A stretch of DNA of 63,985 nucleotides, filler included, from Octopus bimaculoides (taxonomy: Eukaryota): assembly GCF_001194135.2 (NCBI RefSeq). It is 6 parts of 6 records of this genome, joined end to end, with 100 filler letters (N's around TTAATTAATTAA, not from the genome) between each part and the next. Parts side by side here need not be neighbours in the genome. Positions count along the whole stretch, not along the records: positions 1 to 28,749 come from NC_068981.1; 5 more parts are not named here. The stretch is one strand, 5' to 3'. Below are positions 5,917 through 27,127 of this stretch, piece by piece. Made by a program: the position numbers and the translations under genes. Each line of letters begins with the position of its first letter. The first letter of the stretch is position 1. The notes beneath the pieces are model-generated. The model saw only the letters and a program-made list of their open reading frames with translations, was not told where the DNA came from and searched no databases.

Positions 5917-7037
5917 TACAAAGGTAGGCTGAAAAATAAATGGGATGACTATCAAGGAGTGATGCTAAAGTAAGATCTTGCATGCATTAATTTCACCCTC
6001 TCTCATGAATAACTGCAATGTTTCTTTTCAGGGAGACTCACAGCTGACTGTCCAAAGGAAACTTCAAATGTAACTAGTAGCGACTTGAAAATGGACAAAA
6101 TTTGGCGTTGTGGTGTTACCAAGTACCTACTGAAAAACAGTTTAATCTCCAACGATATTCATGTTGACATGGTTGCTACATTAGGGGATGACACTCCAGT
6201 TTTATCAGCAGTGCAAAAGTGGGCAGCTGAATTTAGGAGGGAAAGGGAGAGTCTTGAAGATGACCCAAGGTCTGGTTGTCCTGCAACTGCCACAACCGAG
6301 GAAAACATTGATCGTAATCACGTAAAACTTTGATCAAAAACGCGCCAGGTTGACTACATCGCGGGAAAATCATTGTTTGAGGCAGATCCAACTGGTTTCC
6401 TTGAACATTTCCTGACCCAGGATGAGCGTTGGCTTCTTCACTTTCAGCTAGAGACAACGGGACAATTCATGCCGTGGAATCACCCCTCTTCACTTGCTCC
6501 AAAGAAAGCCAATGTCATTTCATCTGCAGGGAAGATGATAGCTTGTCTTTTTTGATGCAAAAGGCATTTTGTTTATTGGCTACCTTCAAAAGGGCCGCAC
6601 CATCAATGGAAAGTATTATACCAACTTGTTGAGGCAGTTACGAAAGACGATCAAGACCACACGGCCTGGGAAATTGACTAAAGGAGTCTTGTTTCACCAG
6701 GACAATACTTTAGCACACAAGTCCTAGTTTTGTGCATGACTGTGGCTTTTCTTCCTCTTTTCCTTATTTGGACCCATCTGACTATCGTCTGTTCCCCAAC
6801 ATGAAGAAACACTTGGCTGGGAACCAGTATCACAGTGATGATGACGTCATATCTGCTGTTGGTCTCTTTTTTGACGAACAAGATGAAAGCGTCTTCACCA
6901 ATGGGATCCAAGCACTGCAACACCAATGGAAGAAGTGTGTGGATCGCAAGGGGGACCATATTGAAAAATAAACTTATTTGGTCACATTCCATGAGAGTAA
7001 CTTGATCAGCCAATGAAATTTTCAACCGACCCTTGTA
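5917..7037 (+). mobile_element. Mariner (irritans/Himar-like) element with both TIRs and TA ends; internally deleted, frameshifted transposase
   Basis: Left end TACAAAGGTAGGCTGAAAA, right end TTTTCAACCGACCCTTGTA (16/19 inverted match). Transposase pieces: KWAAEFRR..DDPRSG.P, TQDERW (D1), SAGKM..F*DAKGILFI.YLQKG.TING.YY, VLFHQDN (D2), YLDPSDYRLFPNMKKHLAG (D3), GIQALQHQWKKCVDRKGDHIEK. Confidence 0.95.
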
Positions 7038-7796: not shown

Positions 7797-8300
7797 TTTA
7801 AAAAGCCAAACTTACTATTTTCATTTCGGTTTCTGTGCTTATCCACACCTACGGTCATAAATGCAGGTACTGGTCGAATAAGTATGATTGCAAAGAATCT
7901 CTGGAGTAACGTTATTCGATAGGATGTATGGCTCAGAGATCAGGGCGTCTTTCCAAGTCGAGCCGCTACGTCTCATTGACAGGTCACAGCTTCGATACTA
8001 CGGACATATAATAAAAATGTCGCAAAGATCGCAAGACGGATTCTTCAAGCTGAGCCAACGGGCAGGAAACTTAGGGGTTGACCAAGAACAAGATGGCTAG
8101 ATAATATCCATAGACTCATTTCGTCACGCTTGGGAACGCAGCAGGAACATCAAATGACGATTACTTCTGATATGACTCTATGGAGGATGTGTCTGAGGAC
8201 TCTATCCCCAAGACCCTTCCAGAAATAGTGGGCGGAGAAGATGGAAGGATGGATGGATGGATGGATGGATGGATGGATGGATGGATAGATAGATGGATAG
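7797..8300 (+). mobile_element. 3' end of RTE-clade LINE (Rex3/Expander-like) with (GATG)n tail
   Basis: KAKLTIFISVSVLIHTYGH, RISGVTLFDRM..SEIRASFQVEPL-RLIDRSQLRYYGHI.KM, RILQAEPTGRKLRG*PRTRWLDNI. The 3' UTR ends ..CCCAAGACCC..GGCGGAGAAGATGGAAG(GATG)n. Confidence 0.85.
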
Positions 8301-9182: not shown

Positions 9183-10707
9183 NNNNNNNNNNNNNNNNNN
9201 NNNCTCTTCCGATCTTTTACTTACATACACCCATGCGTTCATTCATACATACATACATACATACATACATACACACATACATACATATAATTTAATTTTC
9301 TCTTAGCACACAAGTATGCACACACGTCTCGCATAAATACAGTAAACGATTAAGAACCATATTTCTAGATGACGCAAAACAACCCCTTCGCAGCCACAGC
9401 CTTATAGCTCACAATACACGCGTCATACTTATTTAGGCTTCACTTTCTGATCTCGTGTCACTTTCTGTTGTGCTCAATCTTAGTTCTACAGTGAGTTGCA
9501 ACCCTCTTATAAAATTTGTCATAAAATAGGTTGGTCATGTGGCACGATCTGAATATGACACATACCTATAAAAGCATAATTCGCTGTAAACAAACATGCA
9601 CAAGTTTTTAAATAATTAACCATTTGAAGGTCCTTTCGGGAAAAAAATTATTCGATTCTCTCTCATGAAATGCGAATACAATTCATTAAACTTCATCTTT
9701 CAGTGCTCAGTAAAATTATCTCCAGCTTCTACCAGACAATTATCCGAACGTTGTGTACTTATTCTGCCTTTTCCTAATTACACTACTTTATGGTCCATAT
9801 TACACTTCTTCCAATTTTTTCTTGAAATCTCTTCCCTTCGATTATGTCCTTGCAGTAGAGCGCAGCGCGGCTAAATGATTTCGCTGTAGCAGTTTAATAT
9901 TCTATTGACATTGCTCTTTTTTTTTACATGAATTAGAGTAGACTATTAGAGTTATTTGTATATAATATATCTTCATTTGACTTTCTGTAAAGATAATGCC
10001 TCCTTGTAGTTGAGTCTAGTGTGTTGCCTAAAATGTTGACGATTCATAAATTAGGACTAAGTTTAAGTTCAATTTTTTCTATATTTCTGTTAACGTTTTT
10101 CTAAATGTATTTACACCGTGTCTATTTATGCGGATGACTGCCATCCTGTCATCTCTATACAATTCTACACTGAAAAAGTTAGTTTTTTTTAAAGCATGAC
10201 TGAAATGTACAAGTAGTTAGAATTTGCAAACTTTGGCCCATCGAAACTACGAATGAAGGTGTTCATCTCTCATTCATTTGCTTTAACCTGAAAGGTGTCA
10301 TTATTAAATAAGAGCGGCATGATAGTCATTATTAAACTGATATCTGTCACTAATTGTAGAAAATATTTTGCCAAATTATAAAATTTACTGGAGAAAAGAT
10401 TTTGTGATTGATAATTTGAATTTCACCATACCAGATGGAGGAATCGATAGTGCTTCATTTTCTATACTACTGAACGACTTAATCACAGCACTATTACTAT
10501 TCCATTGTAGTAATTCAGCGGCACGTATAAGCTTTGAGTTTATGGAACCGAAGATATGTTTGCTAACTACGTCCAGTTGATTTAGACACAAGATTTTCAA
10601 TGTGAACCATCAAGACTACAGATCTTAACTGAAACAGTTATTTTTAATTGCCTGAACGAACGTGCACCGGTGATATAGTGAATTATATAATACATACACA
10701 CGCCTGT

Positions 10708-11813: not shown

Positions 11814-12297
11814 CCTTCGAAACGGGGAGTAGATGGAACAGGGACAACTGAAGAAGGGAAATNNNNNNNNNNNNNNNNNNNNNNNNNNNNNNNNNNNNNN
11901 NNNNNNNNNNNNNNNNNNNNNNNNNNNNNNNNNNNNNNNNNNNNNNNNNNNNNNNNNNNNNNNNNNNNNNNNNNNNNNNNNNNNNNNNNNNNNNNNNNNN
12001 NNNNNNNNNNNNNNNNNNNNNNNNNNNNNNNNNNNNNNNNNNNNNNNNNNNNNNNNNNNNNNNNNNNNNNNNNNNNNNNNNNNNNNNNNNNNNNNNNNNN
12101 NNNNNNNNNNNNNNNNNNNNNNNNNNNNNNNNNNNNNNNNNNNNNNNNNNNNNNNNNNNNNNNNNNNNNNNNNNNNNNNNNNNNNNNNNNNNNNNNNNNN
12201 NNNNNNNNNNNNNNNNNNNNNNNNNNNNNNNNNNNNNNNNNNNNNNNNNNNNNNNNNNNNNNNNNNNNNNNNNNNNNNNNNNNNNNNNNNNNNNNNN

Positions 12298-16112: not shown

Positions 16113-16825
16113 GCACATACATACATACATTACACACACACACACACACACACANNNNNNNNNNNNNNNNNNNNNNNNNNNNNNNNNNNNNNNNNNNNNN
16201 NNNNNNNNNNNNNNNNNNNNNNNNNNNNNNNNNNNNNNNNNNNNNNNNNNNNNNNNNNNNNNNNNNNNNNNNNNNNNNNNNNNNNNNNNNNNNNNNNNNN
16301 NNNNNNNNNNNNNNNNNNNNNNNNNNNNNNNNNNNNNNNNNNNNNNNNNNNNNNNNNNNNNNNNNNNNNNNNNNNNNNNNNNNNNNNNNNNNNNNNNNNN
16401 NNNNNNNNNNNNNNNNNNNNNNNNNNNNNNNNNNNNNNNNNNNNNNNNNNNNNNNNNNNNNNNNNNNNNNNNNNNNNNNNNNNNNNNNNNNNNNNNNNNN
16501 NNNNNNNNNNNNNNNNNNNNNNNNNNNNNNNNNNNNNNNNNNNNNNNNNNNNNNNNNNNNNNNNNNNNNNNNNNNNNNNNNNNNNNNNNNNNNNNNNNNN
16601 NNNNNNNNNNNNNNNNNNNNNNNNNNNNNNNNNNNNNNNNNNNNNNNNNNNNNNNNNNNNNNNNNNNNNNNNNNNNNNNNNNNNNNNNNNNNNNNNNNNN
16701 NNNNNNNNNNNNNNNNNNNNNNNNNNNNNNNNNNNNNNATACGGTATAAAAGATACGTATTTTATTAAGGACTAGTGTGATTTTATTAAGCTCGTGCCTT
16801 TTCCCATGGATGTTATGACAACTAA

Positions 16826-19281: not shown

Positions 19282-19839
19282 NNNNNNNNNNNNNNNNNNN
19301 NNNNNNNNNNNNNNNNNNNNNNNNNNNNNNNNNNNNNNNNNNNNNNNNNNNNNNNNNNNNNNNNNNNNNNNNNNNNNNNNNNNNNNNNNNNNNNNNNNNN
19401 NNNNNNNNNNNNNNNNNNNNNNNNNNNNNNNNNNNNNNNNNNNNNNNNNNNNNNNNNNNNNNNNNNNNNNNNNNNNNNNNNNNNNATATATATATATATA
19501 TATAAGAAATAAGAAAGGAGAATGCCACAATAAATATGATATATAATAAATACTCATGCAGTGTTAGCACAATAAATGCCTCTTTTTACAAAATAATGCT
19601 CACAAAATCTACCGAACAACAATACTAGTACGAACGTAAATATTAATGGCGGAAACAACGACTTTACTTATGAGGTTACCGAACTAAAGGAAAATCAAAT
19701 TAATACCGCAAGATAATTTGTTTGTTAATTTGAATATAAACTAATTCTAAAAGAAAGTACACTCAACTTTGAAAGTCTTTATGACGATATTATAAATGCG
19801 GTTTAAATATTGGCGTATTTAAAAGGGTTAAGTTGAAGG

Positions 19840-22622: not shown

Positions 22623-23220
22623 NNNNNNNNNNNNNNNNNNNNNNNNNNNNNNNNNNNNNNNNNNNNNNNNNNNNNNNNNNNNNNNNNNNNNNNNNNNNNN
22701 NNNNNNNNNNNNNNNNNNNNNNNNNNNNNNNNNNNNNNNNNNNNNNNNNNNNNNNNNNNNNNNNNNNNNNNNNNNNNNNNNNNNNNNNNNNNNNNNNNNN
22801 NNNNNNNNNNNNNNNNNNNNNNNNNNNNNNNNNNNNNNNNNNNNNNNNNNNNNNNNNNNNNNNNNNNNNNNNNNNNNNNNNNNNNNNNNNNNNNNNNNNN
22901 NNNNNNNNNNNNNNNNNNNNNNNNNNNNNNNNNNNNNNNNNNNNNNNNNNNNNNNNNNNNNNNNNNNNNNNNNNNNNNNNNNNNNNNNNNNNNNNNNNNN
23001 NNNNNNNNNNNNNNNNNNNNNNNNNNNNNNNNNNNNNNNNNNNNNNNNNNNNNNNNNNNNNNNNNNNNNNNNNNNNNNNNNNNNNNNNNNNNNNNNNNNN
23101 NNNNNNNNNNNNNNNNNNNNNNNNNNNNNNNNNNNNNNNNNNNNNNNNNNNNNNNNNNNNNNNNNNNNNNNNNNNNNNNNNNNNNNNNNNNNNNNNNNNN
23201 NNNNNNNNNNNNNNNNNNNN

Positions 23221-24051: not shown

Positions 24052-25224
24052 TAGACACACACATATATGTATATATGCATGCATATACTATATATGGATT
24101 TCTATGTAATACATGTACATGCATACGTATACATATATACATGCAAATATTGACACACGCACGCACGTATATATGTATATGTGAATATATATATACATAC
24201 ATATATACACATACATACGTATATATATATATATATATATATACATATACACACACACACACATATATATAAATATACACACACACACATATATATATAT
24301 GTATATATATATATTTATATATATATATANNNNNNNNNNNNNNNNNNNNNNNNNNNNNNNNNNNNNNNNNNNNNNNNNNNNNNNNNNNNNNNNNNNNNNN
24401 NNNNNNNNNNNNNNNNNNNNNNNNNNNNNNNNNNNNNNNNNNNNNNNNNNNNNNNNNNNNNNNNNNNNNNNNNNNNNNNNNNNNNNNNNNNNNNNNNNNN
24501 NNNNNNNNNNNNNNNNNNNNNNNNNNNNNNNNNNNNNNNNNNNNNNNNNNNNNNNNNNNNNNNNNNNNNNNNNNNNNNNNNNNNNNNNNNNNNNNNNNNN
24601 NNNNNNNNNNNNNNNNNNNNNNNNNNNNNNNNNNNNNNNNNNNNNNNNNNNNNNNNNNNNNNNNNNNNNNNNNNNNNNNNNNNNNNNNNNNNNNNNNNNN
24701 NNNNNNNNNNNNNNNNNNNNNNNNNNNNNNNNNNNNNNNNNNNNNNNNNNNNNNNNNNNNNNNNNNNNNNNNNNNNNNNNNNNNNNNNNNNNNNNNNNNN
24801 NNNNNNNNNNNNNNNNNNNNNNNNNNNNNNNNNNNNNNNNNNNNNNNNNNNNNNNNNNNNNNNNNNNNNNNNNNNNNNNNNNNNNNNNNNNNNNNNNNNN
24901 NNNNNNNNNNNNNNNNNNNNNNNNNNNNNNNNNNNNNNNNNNNNNNNNNNNNNNNNNNNNNNNNNNNNNNNNNNNNNNNNNNNNNNNNNNNNNNNNNNNN
25001 NNNNNNNNNNNNNNNNNNNNNNNNNNNNNNNNNNNNNNNNNNNNNNNNNNNNNNNNNNNNNNNNNNNNNNNNNNNNNNNNNNNNNNNNNNNNNNNNNNNN
25101 NNNNNNNNNNNNNNNNNNNNNNNNNNNNNNNNNNNNNNNNNNNNNNNNNNNNNNNNNNNNNNNNNNNNNNNNNNNNNNNNNNNNNNNNNNNNNNNNNNNN
25201 NNNNNNNNNNNNNNNNNNNNNNNN

Positions 25225-25922: not shown

Positions 25923-26355
25923 TCACATATGCCCACATACATACATAAAGACACACCTACATACGCACGTGTATACAAACGGTTGCACACACACACACAA
26001 CACACACACATACACAAACACACACATATTTAGTAGACCGCAAACTCGACACGTTATATTCTCTGTAACCTACAACTTTCAACTTACCNNNNNNNNNNNN
26101 NNNNNNNNNNNNNNNNNNNNNNNNNNNNNNNNNNNNNNNNNNNNNNNNNNNNNNNNNNNNNNNNNNNNNNNNNNNNNGCTAAGAAAGAAAGAAAGAAAGA
26201 AAGAAAGACAATATAGTATAGGTAGAATGGAAAGGAAAAGAACAGTAATCAGAAAGGTATCGAAATTAAGGGAGAGAAGAGAAAAAAAAGAAAAGCAAAA
26301 GAAAAGAACAAAAAGAAAAGTAAAGAAAAAGTTTTCTACTTACTTAATGAAAGAT

Positions 26356-26682
26356 CTATTTCATTAAGACGTTTATCAATAGAGATCTTCGACCTCGTCT
26401 CACTAAATCTCTCCTTCTCTTAGACCGTAGTTTTCGAGGATTTATCCTAGTATTTTGGCAGAGGGCTCCAACATATGGATACGGGCAGATGCACTTGCAC
26501 ATCCCCAAGAAAGTGTCCGGCCAATACATTGTACCACCGTTCTTACATTCACCCACTTCGCAGATCTCGTAAAAACGTATAGAAATTGCCAATTCCACAA
26601 ATGTTAAGAAAAGAAAACATTTAACCAGCGAGTTAAATAAATTTGCTTTGCGTTTACTACAACCACTTACTGCTACCACCAT
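26356..26682 (-). CDS. Probable secreted/prepro EGF-like peptide (108 aa, single exon)
   Basis: Strong Kozak context (AGCATGG). Hydrophobic segment CFLFLTFVELAIS ends in A-x-S. EGF-like CEVGECKNGGTMYWPDTFLGMCKCICPYPYVGALC has the NGG, CxC and YxGxxC hallmarks. Basic tail contains RSKR and RGRR. TATA and CCAAT motifs lie upstream. Confidence 0.78.
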   Translation of the reverse strand: MVVAVSGCSKRKANLFNSLVKCFLFLTFVELAISIRFYEICEVGECKNGGTMYWPDTFLGMCKCICPYPYVGALCQNTRINPRKLRSKRRRDLVRRGRRSLLINVLMK

Positions 26683-26742
26683 GCTGCTTGTGTTATTGAA
26701 TTCAAGTTGTGCTTCTCGAGATACGTTACAGGCAGATTCTGC

Positions 26743-26925
26743 GACTGACTGCGTTTATGCTGGCTAAGAAACTACTCGCTTTTATAATACAGTTGCATGA
26801 GCCAATCGTGTATAAGATATCAAAATTTGCATACCAGTAAACTGGAAGTGGGGGTTTCCCGGTCGGAGGTTTCCCGGTCGGAAGTTTCCTTAGCGGAATA
26901 TTAACTAGGACAAGAGGAAGTATAA
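26743..26925 (-). promoter_or_regulatory. Candidate promoter of the EGF-like gene: TATA, CCAAT, Inr-like and kB/ETS cluster
   Basis: TATAAAAG on minus (26786-26779), AGCCAATCG (26800-26808), TCAGTC (26748-26743), GGGGTTTCCC (26851-26860, fits GGGRNNYYCC), a 15-bp repeat GGTTTCCCGGTCGGA x2.5, and GGAAGT cores at ~26844, ~26880 and ~26916. Confidence 0.55.
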
Positions 26926-27127
26926 AAATAAAAACAAGGAAAGTAACGACATTCACATTCGCACGTCTTAATTTATTCTACATTTTTATTACACTCACGG
27001 CGATTTCACTTTAGGGGCACTAATTAATATCTTAATGCTTTCCACGTCGCTACTGCATTGTTTGGAATTCAAAACAAACCAATATAGAGAACTTCAATAA
27101 TTCTTATATATATATATATGTGTGTGT

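Follow-up and report, generated by a model that had tools for sequence, protein, structure and literature searches.

In this study, we analysed the first part (positions 1 to 28,749, from NC_068981.1; hereafter the 28.7-kb piece) of a window that is composed of six joined parts and comprises 63,985 nucleotides (nt) from the genome of Octopus bimaculoides. This piece contains a short open reading frame (ORF) at 26356..26682 on the minus strand that encodes a small protein with a single epidermal growth factor (EGF)-like core. Comparison of this ORF with its counterpart in a second octopod-like genome revealed strong purifying selection on the protein encoded by codons 34–78, the region expected to form the mature peptide. 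Judged by its sequence, the octopus peptide is predicted to be a stand-alone secreted member of an uncharacterised family that is built on the EGF framework of complement C9 and is conserved across Spiralia. We consider it probable, with a rough probability of 0.6, that the ORF is a working octopus gene with a single exon and that its product is a small secreted prepropeptide, which convertases cut to give an extracellular signal. In cephalopods, the secreted signalling peptides characterised so far are few, and genes that are short and rich in cysteine can readily escape notice or keep the label ‘hypothetical’.

The ORF has an ATG start, 108 codons and a TAG stop, and its protein is MVVAVSGCSKRKANLFNSLVKCFLFLTFVELAISIRFYEICEVGECKNGGTMYWPDTFLGMCKCICPYPYVGALCQNTRINPRKLRSKRRRDLVRRGRRSLLINVLMK. 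Six core cysteines (C41, C46, C62, C64, C66 and C75) lie within 35 residues, two extra cysteines (C8 and C22) are present in the N-terminal region, and Met52 occupies the slot of the canonical third EGF cysteine, after N-G-G-T. Polybasic motifs are found at residues 83–86 (RKLR), 86–89 (RSKR), 88–91 (KRRR) and 96–99 (RGRR). The hydropathy profile has a sole hydrophobic stretch, which is N-terminal, and the protein therefore has no transmembrane segment. Each position that the original prediction had given for the 108-residue ORF, its cysteine spacing, Met52, the A-I-S of the leader and the four polybasic motifs was confirmed by the ORF listing, and its description of a compact gene for a small EGF-like protein that lacks a transmembrane segment agrees with the single open, apparently intron-less frame and with the N-terminal location of the only hydrophobic stretch. 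Length alone is little evidence for the ORF because long ORFs are common in this AT-rich, repeat-rich and microsatellite-dense piece, which has 26 of at least 90 residues. The content of the ORF is far beyond chance: the cysteine framework fits no other frame in a six-frame scan of the piece, a colinear counterpart exists, the protein matches a family profile and the changes in its core are all silent. An identical 108-residue protein is present in UniRef and MetaClust as a predicted protein, and so it represents an uncharacterised prediction rather than an overlooked ORF.

A word-indexed search of 5.8 billion proteins identified a sole orthologue (P0002) beside the window’s own protein, with 72% identity over the full length (E-value 3e-46). 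The orthologue is encoded on two ~1-kb Logan contigs (SRR11869391/94) that are genomic, derive from the second octopod-like genome and are colinear with window positions 26000..27010 (-), with ~81% overall identity and many indels in the flanks, whereas the number of indels inside the 327-nt ORF is zero. Across core codons 34–78 the two proteins are 100% identical, and the DNA has four synonymous differences, all at third positions, and no non-synonymous ones (non-synonymous divergence, dN, 0; synonymous divergence, dS, 0.167), with 97% DNA identity in the core versus 78–80% in the remainder of the ORF. If four substitutions fell in the core at random, all of them would be silent with a probability of 0.0025, and the chance of no more than four differences in 135 nt is 5e-9 when the flanks, at 20% divergence, are taken as the reference; therefore, the core is constrained as protein. 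The leader (codons 1–33) has 22 differences that change 18 of its 33 residues (dN/dS 3.4) and the tail (codons 79–107) has a dN/dS of 2.2, so that the signal-like N-terminus and the C-terminal tail have diverged at the neutral rate or faster. RSKRRR (codons 86–91) is retained unchanged by the orthologue, whose DNA differs there at one silent site, and the ATG, stop, TATA box and inverted CCAAT box are also kept, while RGRR of the octopus tail corresponds to RVQR. The absence of an orthologue had been named in the original prediction as grounds for abandoning it; a colinear one was found, whose mature part is under the strong purifying selection described above.

The true frame of the orthologue ends at a TGA after 112 residues. 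Its recorded length of 162 residues (L001 410..898) was rejected as an artefact of the gene caller, which had translated the TGA as Trp and thereby added 50 false residues. Short eukaryotic ORFs in the searched protein collection can have false extensions of this type.

The family to which the octopus protein belongs emerged only by an exhaustive phmmer search of 1.84 billion representative proteins, which gave 16 matches; word-indexed searches had yielded the protein itself, the one orthologue and a few family members. Nine of the phmmer matches are short proteins (68–164 residues) with one match each. In eight of these nine, and also in P0020 and the Mytilus protein P0021 from a profile search, the CxCxC is invariant and NGG-x is never followed by a cysteine. 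The family pattern comprises a hydrophobic leader, a spacer of 2–7 residues, C-x2-5-C-x-NGG-x4-P-x3-FG-x-CxCxC-x8-C-Q and then basic residues with a variable tail, all in one open frame. The ninth short match, P0013, is a canonical six-cysteine EGF protein with a similar CPYPYYGSLCQ and a tail, RRSRSLLNKLL, resembling the basic tail of the octopus protein. Named members are from the bivalve Mytilus galloprovincialis (VDH91400.1/VDH91404.1), the annelid Lamellibrachia satsuma (KAI0210784.1) and the flatworm Cichlidogyrus casuarinus (KAL3307052.1), and the others are from ENA/Logan assemblies (including ERZ25072999, ERZ26052449, SRR344861xx and SRR1186939x). Database labels of the relatives are ‘hypothetical’ or ‘EGF-like domain-containing’ (UniRef, two relatives), and literature searches revealed no paper describing a small CxCxC EGF-like family.

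Alignment of the octopus core to a profile of ten non-cephalopod members by hhalign gave a probability of 98.8% and an E-value of 8.8e-17, with the cysteines, NGG, P and G in register, at identities to family members of only 30–39%. The octopus protein and its relatives share the layout of leader, domain and basic tail in a short single ORF. The octopus protein departs from the family in that its conserved N-terminal extension (IRFYEI) is longer, its polybasic run is of unusual length and W-P-D-T-F-L-G replaces L-P-x-x-I-F-G; it also has P-Y-P-Y. No named Lymnaea protein was present among the sequence matches to the octopus protein or the family.

The family members are stand-alone genes. P0011 is represented by 13 contigs of 1.0–1.4 kb from 13 runs, which are mRNA-like because all of them begin at a common 5' position and terminate in an A-run behind AATAAA, some with adapter remnants, and the only protein encoded there is one of 100 residues. 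P0012 and P0009 are single ORFs on contigs of 0.9–1.3 Mb. The annotated Mytilus protein has 92 residues and no leader, but its frame runs 72 nt further upstream to MTSNMMILTTTLLVVLSLASSGLA, a classical signal peptide; VDH91400.1/VDH91404.1 are thus N-terminally truncated by 24 residues, and the 116-residue form is P0022. The Mytilus galloprovincialis locus (UYJE01000226.1, ~192.5–211.3 kb, L003/L004) has two identical copies 6.4 kb apart, accompanied by duplicated neighbours, with genes of 242, 320 and 116 residues.

Several other matches were rejected as relatives. The Salpingoeca ‘fibropellin’, the Littorina ‘mucin-2-like’ protein and ENA proteins of 2–5.6 kb consist of canonical multi-EGF repeats that score by repetition, and P0006 is a translated low-complexity repeat. 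The stingray protein P0007 (Hemitrygon akajei XP_072906131.1) has three repeats, each with a terminal four-cysteine EGF remnant, PCQNGGIWDDDDDECDCPDPYEGTYCE. These remnants lack the first and third cysteines, which represents another route to loss of the NGG cysteine, unrelated to the CxCxC family.

The octopus core matches the EGF signature C-x-C-x5-G-x2-C with CICPYPYVGALC. When the family profile was compared with PDB sequences, the EGF module of C9 (6dlw_A 486–524) was the best match (E-value 1.7e-6), followed by Del-1 (1.3e-4), Notch1 (2e-4) and EGF (1.6e-3), as well as uPA, neuregulin, factor IX, TGF-alpha and Spitz (range 1e-4 to 1e-2). With the single octopus sequence, the E-values were 7e-4 for Del-1 and 0.017 for C9. 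All six cysteines are in register in the alignments to 6dlw_A 486–524, a part of C9 that its depositors described as the EGF domain (PMC6093860). The ‘shifted cysteine’ of the octopus peptide is therefore a known and structurally solved EGF variant, since the C9 EGF has the same framework. The original prediction had regarded the cysteine pattern as atypical, with a pairing that must differ; the pattern is, however, invariant in the spiralian family and occurs in the solved C9 EGF, and it need not imply a new pairing geometry.

In the proposed mode of action, the N-terminal 34 residues would act as a signal peptide that is cut after A-I-S. The octopus leader has an n-region with K10, R11 and K12, a hydrophobic core from C22 to V29 (CFLFLTFV) and a c-region E-L-A-I-S whose positions -3 and -1 are occupied by small residues (A32-I33-S34), and cleavage between S34 and I35 is predicted by inspection; the leader of the orthologue retains the hydrophobic core (CILLLTLV) and has T-A-S at the cut. 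Both octopod sequences have, by inspection, a hydrophobic core and agree with the -3/-1 rule, the octopus core being short, and a hydrophobic leader lies directly before C1 in every family member with a complete N-terminus. The mature core would be closed by three EGF-type disulfides, C41-C62, C46-C64 and C66-C75 (1-3, 2-4 and 5-6), in which C62 would stand in for the absent third cysteine. Cleavage at R-S-K-R-R-R by a furin-type convertase would follow, with subsequent trimming of basic residues by a carboxypeptidase. KR or RR is found 4–10 residues past the last cysteine in most family members, and the R-X-K/R-R motif is conserved between the two octopod genomes (RSKR and KRRR being identical). 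Of the candidate signal peptide and polybasic sites proposed at the outset, the former is plausible by inspection and the latter include the conserved RSKRRR.

These steps would separate a neutral peptide of ~44–50 residues, IRFYEIC...CQNT(RINP), from a tail that is strongly basic. The charge of R79–K108 is about +12, and the mature core, with a pI of 4.9–6.2, is neutral to acidic. Mature peptides should be recognisable as IRFYEICEVGECK... peptides. Potentially, the basic tail is a propeptide, or it may first hold the peptide at the cell surface or matrix; the AlphaFold2 (AF2) model drew it as a helix, at low confidence. The released peptide would be an extracellular signalling ligand (hormone or cytokine-like), with a toxin or an EGFR agonist less likely. 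By analogy, a frozen mature peptide with a free leader and tail is the pattern of hormone and ligand precursors, and because the conservation matches that pattern we prefer signalling over defence as the role of the octopus peptide. A peptide of 44–50 residues is a concrete target for synthesis and receptor hunting by comparative endocrinologists.

The features of the gene and of its surroundings are listed in Table 1.

Table 1. Features of the octopus gene and adjoining sequence in the window.
Feature	Position	Strand	Basis
Complete coding sequence, 108 codons + TAG	26356..26682	-	Single open frame, no indel vs orthologue
Codons 1–34, putative signal peptide	26581..26682	-	Hydropathy, orthologue, family leaders
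Codons 35–78, mature EGF-like core, IRFYEI-C-EVGE-C-KNGGTMYWPDTFLGM-C-K-C-I-C-PYPYVGAL-C-QNT	26449..26580	-	Orthologue identity, family profile, PDB matches
C1 to C6 of core	26458..26562	-	
Codons 83–91, R-K-L-R-S-K-R-R-R, overlapping R-X-K/R-R, putative proprotein-convertase site	26410..26436	-	Sequence motifs, orthologue
Codons 92–108, basic C-terminal tail DLVRRGRRSLLINVLMK, putative propeptide or retention tail	26359..26409	-	Sequence
Conserved 5' leader with start context AGCAGCATGG	26683..26760	-	Orthologue alignment
Initiator (Inr)-like GTCAGTC in 5' leader	26733..26749	-	
Candidate TATA box TATAAAAG, 104 nt upstream of ATG	26779..26786	-	Identical in orthologue; promoter role inferred
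Inverted CCAAT box GATTGGCTCATGC, just upstream of TATA	26795..26807	-	Identical in orthologue; role inferred
2.5 copies of the 15-bp tandem repeat GGTTTCCCGGTCGGA, giving three GG(G)AAAC units	26850..26889	-	Rel/NF-kB consensus matches
34-nt block AATAAATTAAGACGTGCGAATGTGAATGTCGTTA, candidate upstream regulatory element/enhancer	26944..26977	-	100% identical to orthologue
Second in-frame stop (TAA; TGA in orthologue), then consensus donor GTAAGT	26336..26346	-	Both genomes
Assembly gap, 89 N, ~180 nt downstream of stop, masking part of 3' region	26089..26177	.	

Upstream of the ORF, the TATA candidate lies in a block of ~85–88% identity to the orthologue that reaches into the 5' leader. The GG(G)AAAC repeat, 65–110 nt upstream of the TATA candidate, holds every match to GGGRNWYYCC, the Rel/NF-kB consensus, that the 28.7-kb piece contains, and it is partly conserved, with GGGAAATCC at the homologous position in the orthologue. 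These matches represent one locus, where 0.74 would be expected by chance for the window, and three matches were reached in 8 of 100 shuffles; the kB motif is offered as a lead, not as a finding. The 34-nt block further upstream includes GACGTGCG and a repeated GAATGT, and the sequence adjoining it is only 60–80% identical to the orthologue.

Downstream of the ORF, the GTAAGT that follows the second stop may open an intron in the 3' untranslated region (UTR). In both genomes, it is followed by ~165–190 nt of pyrimidine-rich sequence that ends in TTTCTTAG/C (26178..26186). Past the 89-N gap, a block of ~85–88% conservation at 26035..26088 (-) starts with a donor, G/GTAAGT (AG/GTGAGT in the orthologue), and the orthologue has a 70-nt purine-rich segment between the acceptor-like TTTCTTAG/C and the AG/GTGAGT donor. 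This segment could be a small 3'-UTR exon that is masked by the gap in the window. A splice from codon 4 (GCA/GTAAGT) to the AG before ATCTGC was rejected as the main form because a disulfide-rich peptide would thereby lose its leader, which every relative retains; the codon-4 donor is regarded as fortuitous or minor.

A number of observations weigh against the gene encoding a secreted prepropeptide. The main weakness of this interpretation is that there is no evidence of expression in octopus in the data searched: neither transcript nor peptide support was found, the protein collection holds only the gene’s own protein and the one genomic orthologue, and an exact-match look-up of the protein returned zero contigs on record. 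No other leader in the family is as weak as that of the octopus protein (hydropathy over nine residues 2.2–2.5, versus 2.6–3.8), in which residue 21 is charged. The dN/dS values above 1 in the N- and C-terminal parts of the ORF are what non-coding DNA would also show. Donors are conserved both after codon 4 and after the stop, so that alternative splice forms are possible, and no poly(A) signal (AATAAA) lies between the stop and the 89-N gap. Pfam gave zero matches to the octopus protein even at an E-value of 10 (including PF00008 and PF21195), and among 11 relatives there were sub-threshold matches only, to PF00008 in one (E-value 0.0095) and to PF21195 (EGF_C8A_B_C6) in four (E-value at least 0.11). 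The AF2 models are of low confidence (predicted local distance difference test score, pLDDT, 59 with the full protein and 64 with the core), although they draw strands at residues 51–56/61–65, as expected for the hairpin. Foldseek, which was used only as a consistency check since these models are of low confidence, returned EGF modules for all of its top 20 matches, with C9 first, none of them significant (best E-value 0.49). Finally, the disulfide pairing, the cleavage and any receptor of the octopus peptide are putative.

Ligands of EGFR have the consensus CX7CX4-5CX10-13CXCX8GXRC. The octopus peptide could conceivably be a soluble ligand of this kind, acting through an octopus EGFR as do Lymnaea L-EGF or planarian egf-6/egf-7, and the single EGF-like module, the leader, the lack of a transmembrane segment and the Gln that, like in EGF and neuregulin, follows the last cysteine are all in keeping with this, as is the presence of EGF, TGF-alpha, neuregulin and Spitz among the weaker matches of the family profile. 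Known examples of soluble EGFR ligands in spiralians are the secreted L-EGF, which signals via L-EGFR (PMC4210270), and Smed-egf-6/7, which have no transmembrane domain (PMC4914847). Nevertheless, we consider this possibility unlikely. The octopus sequence fails the consensus when it is applied as a regular expression, as its C1–C2 loop has four residues and not seven, its third cysteine is displaced, with X15 to the next cysteine, and it has G-A-L-C rather than G-x-R-C, placing Leu at the position of the receptor-contacting Arg. The residue before the last cysteine is variable in the family (L, A, V, R, Y or I), and the nearest solved relative is the structural module of C9, not a ligand. In addition, the putative ligands of Barberan et al. 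2016 that were compared broadly fit the EGFR consensus, most with a seven-residue first loop and Arg before the last cysteine, and these ligands, including soluble ones, have a cysteine right after NGG-x and no CxCxC (PMC4914847). Among them, planarian egf-6/egf-7 have canonical cysteines and were hence excluded as family members, and Lineus egf-1/3 likewise have a cysteine after NGG-x (PMC4914847). The comparison with EGFR growth factors in the original prediction thus fails on CX4C, the displaced C3 and G-A-L-C. The label ‘EGFR ligand or toxin’ is tempting but unsupported, because the octopus peptide fails the EGFR-ligand consensus, and is corrected here.

A signalling role may extend further than the octopus gene itself. 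Possibly, though we regard this as doubtful, the gene and its relatives represent an ancient, hitherto unrecognised spiralian family of peptide hormones or cytokines on the C9-type module with a receptor other than EGFR, with the octopus member induced by Rel/NF-kB after injury or infection. If so, it would constitute a new ligand–receptor system and would link a stand-alone module to the EGF module of MACPF immune proteins.

Rather improbable, in our view, is that the product is a defence, wound or venom effector under Rel/NF-kB induction, whose cationic tail or C9-type module acts on microbes or prey. The kB matches near the TATA candidate, with the related motif at the same place in the orthologue, the charge of the tail and the fact that the nearest solved module is from an immune pore-former (C9) are compatible with such a role, and inducible expression would account for the missing transcripts. 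EGF-like toxins also exist, such as MIITX2-Mg1a (PMC13311285). Set against this are the neutral to acidic nature of the mature core, the cationic part being the fast-evolving tail, and the frequency at which shuffles reproduce the kB matches. Moreover, a core that is 100% conserved at silent-site divergence of 17% is the opposite of the rapid change that is usual in venom and immune effectors, and the toxin or venom peptide of the original prediction fits poorly with it.

It is highly unlikely that the ORF belongs as an exon to a larger multi-EGF or MACPF protein, or that it is a captured fragment, intron read-through having been mistaken for signal and tail. This reading draws on the exon-like conservation of the core relative to the rest of the ORF, on the donor-like GTAAGT and acceptor-like TTTCTTAG conserved around it and on C9, in which a comparable module follows the MACPF domain (PMC6093860). 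However, no other EGF-like or MACPF-like frame was found in the 28.7-kb piece, of which ~2.8 kb are assembly gaps (9183-9203, 11863-12297, 16155-16738, 19282-19485, 22623-23220, 24330-25224 and 26089-26177), mostly flanked by microsatellites, which limits statements on absent further exons. Pfam detected nothing meaningful in six other ORFs of the piece, and there is no in-phase AG/GT pair around the core that removes an in-frame stop. The octopus module is not located C-terminal to a MACPF domain, as the ORF has its own leader 40 residues before C1. Furthermore, the conservation extends outside the core, to the ATG, 5' leader, TATA, CCAAT, stop position and, with silent change, RSKRRR. Relatives in four phyla-level groups also have the leader, core and basic tail in one ORF, in one case on a complete mRNA-like contig.

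That the ORF is dead or was never functional, either as a chance frame or a recent pseudogene, is barely credible: the lack of octopus expression evidence, a stop five codons earlier than that of the orthologue and the silence of Pfam would suit it, but zero non-synonymous changes were observed at 108 sites where ~16–22 would be expected at the divergence of the rest of the ORF (P 3e-7 to 3e-11), and membership in the family is highly significant.

Two other elements were noted in the 28.7-kb piece. A decayed mariner-like transposase extends over three frames at 6085..6971 (+), with a helix-turn-helix part (...FRRERESLEDDPRSGCP...), GRTINGKYYTNLL...HQDNTLAHKS and ...PYLDPSDYRLFPNMKKHLAG...; its relatives have PF17906/PF13565, and the named ones are only from Octopus sinensis and O. 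bimaculoides, which marks the piece as part of an octopod genome. A short ORF at 7888..8100 (+) has ...DRSQLRYYGHIIKMSQRSQ... and resembles the C-terminal region of reverse-transcriptase ORFs of the long interspersed nuclear element (LINE) type; we presume that it is a retroelement relic.

Comparison with known EGF-type systems helps to place a gene that we favour as encoding a small secreted signalling prepropeptide. EGF-like toxins, such as the ant MIITX2-Mg1a (PDB 7r6p) and sea-anemone gigantoxin I, mimic vertebrate EGF and activate ErbB (PMC13311285). Like these, the octopus product would be a short secreted single-EGF peptide, and 7r6p was found at Foldseek rank 18; unlike these, it does not fit the consensus of the ligands and has a mature part that is frozen instead of evolving fast. 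With EGFR ligands the octopus peptide shares the single EGF-type module, C-x-C-x5-G-x2-C and Gln after the last cysteine.

Among solved structures, the best match of the family profile is C9, for which structures are available in PDB 6dlw, 8b0g and others, the version in C8A/C8B/C6 being covered by PF21195. The C9 EGF is arranged as C-x2-C-x-NGG-T-x7-C-x-C-x-C-P-x7-C and the octopus core as C-x4-C-x-NGG-T-x10-C-x-C-x-C-P-x7-C; neither has a cysteine after NGG-T, and both have an extra cysteine two residues before the usual fourth. The central loop of the octopus peptide is three residues longer than that of C9 and carries P-x3-(F/L)-G. In C9, the EGF module is a C-terminal module of a 540-residue pore-forming MACPF protein and helps to pack the assembly (PMC6093860), whereas in octopus the module would make up the whole mature product of a 108-residue precursor with its own leader and basic tail. 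The EGF variant of the terminal complement proteins thus appears to exist also as a free-standing secreted peptide.

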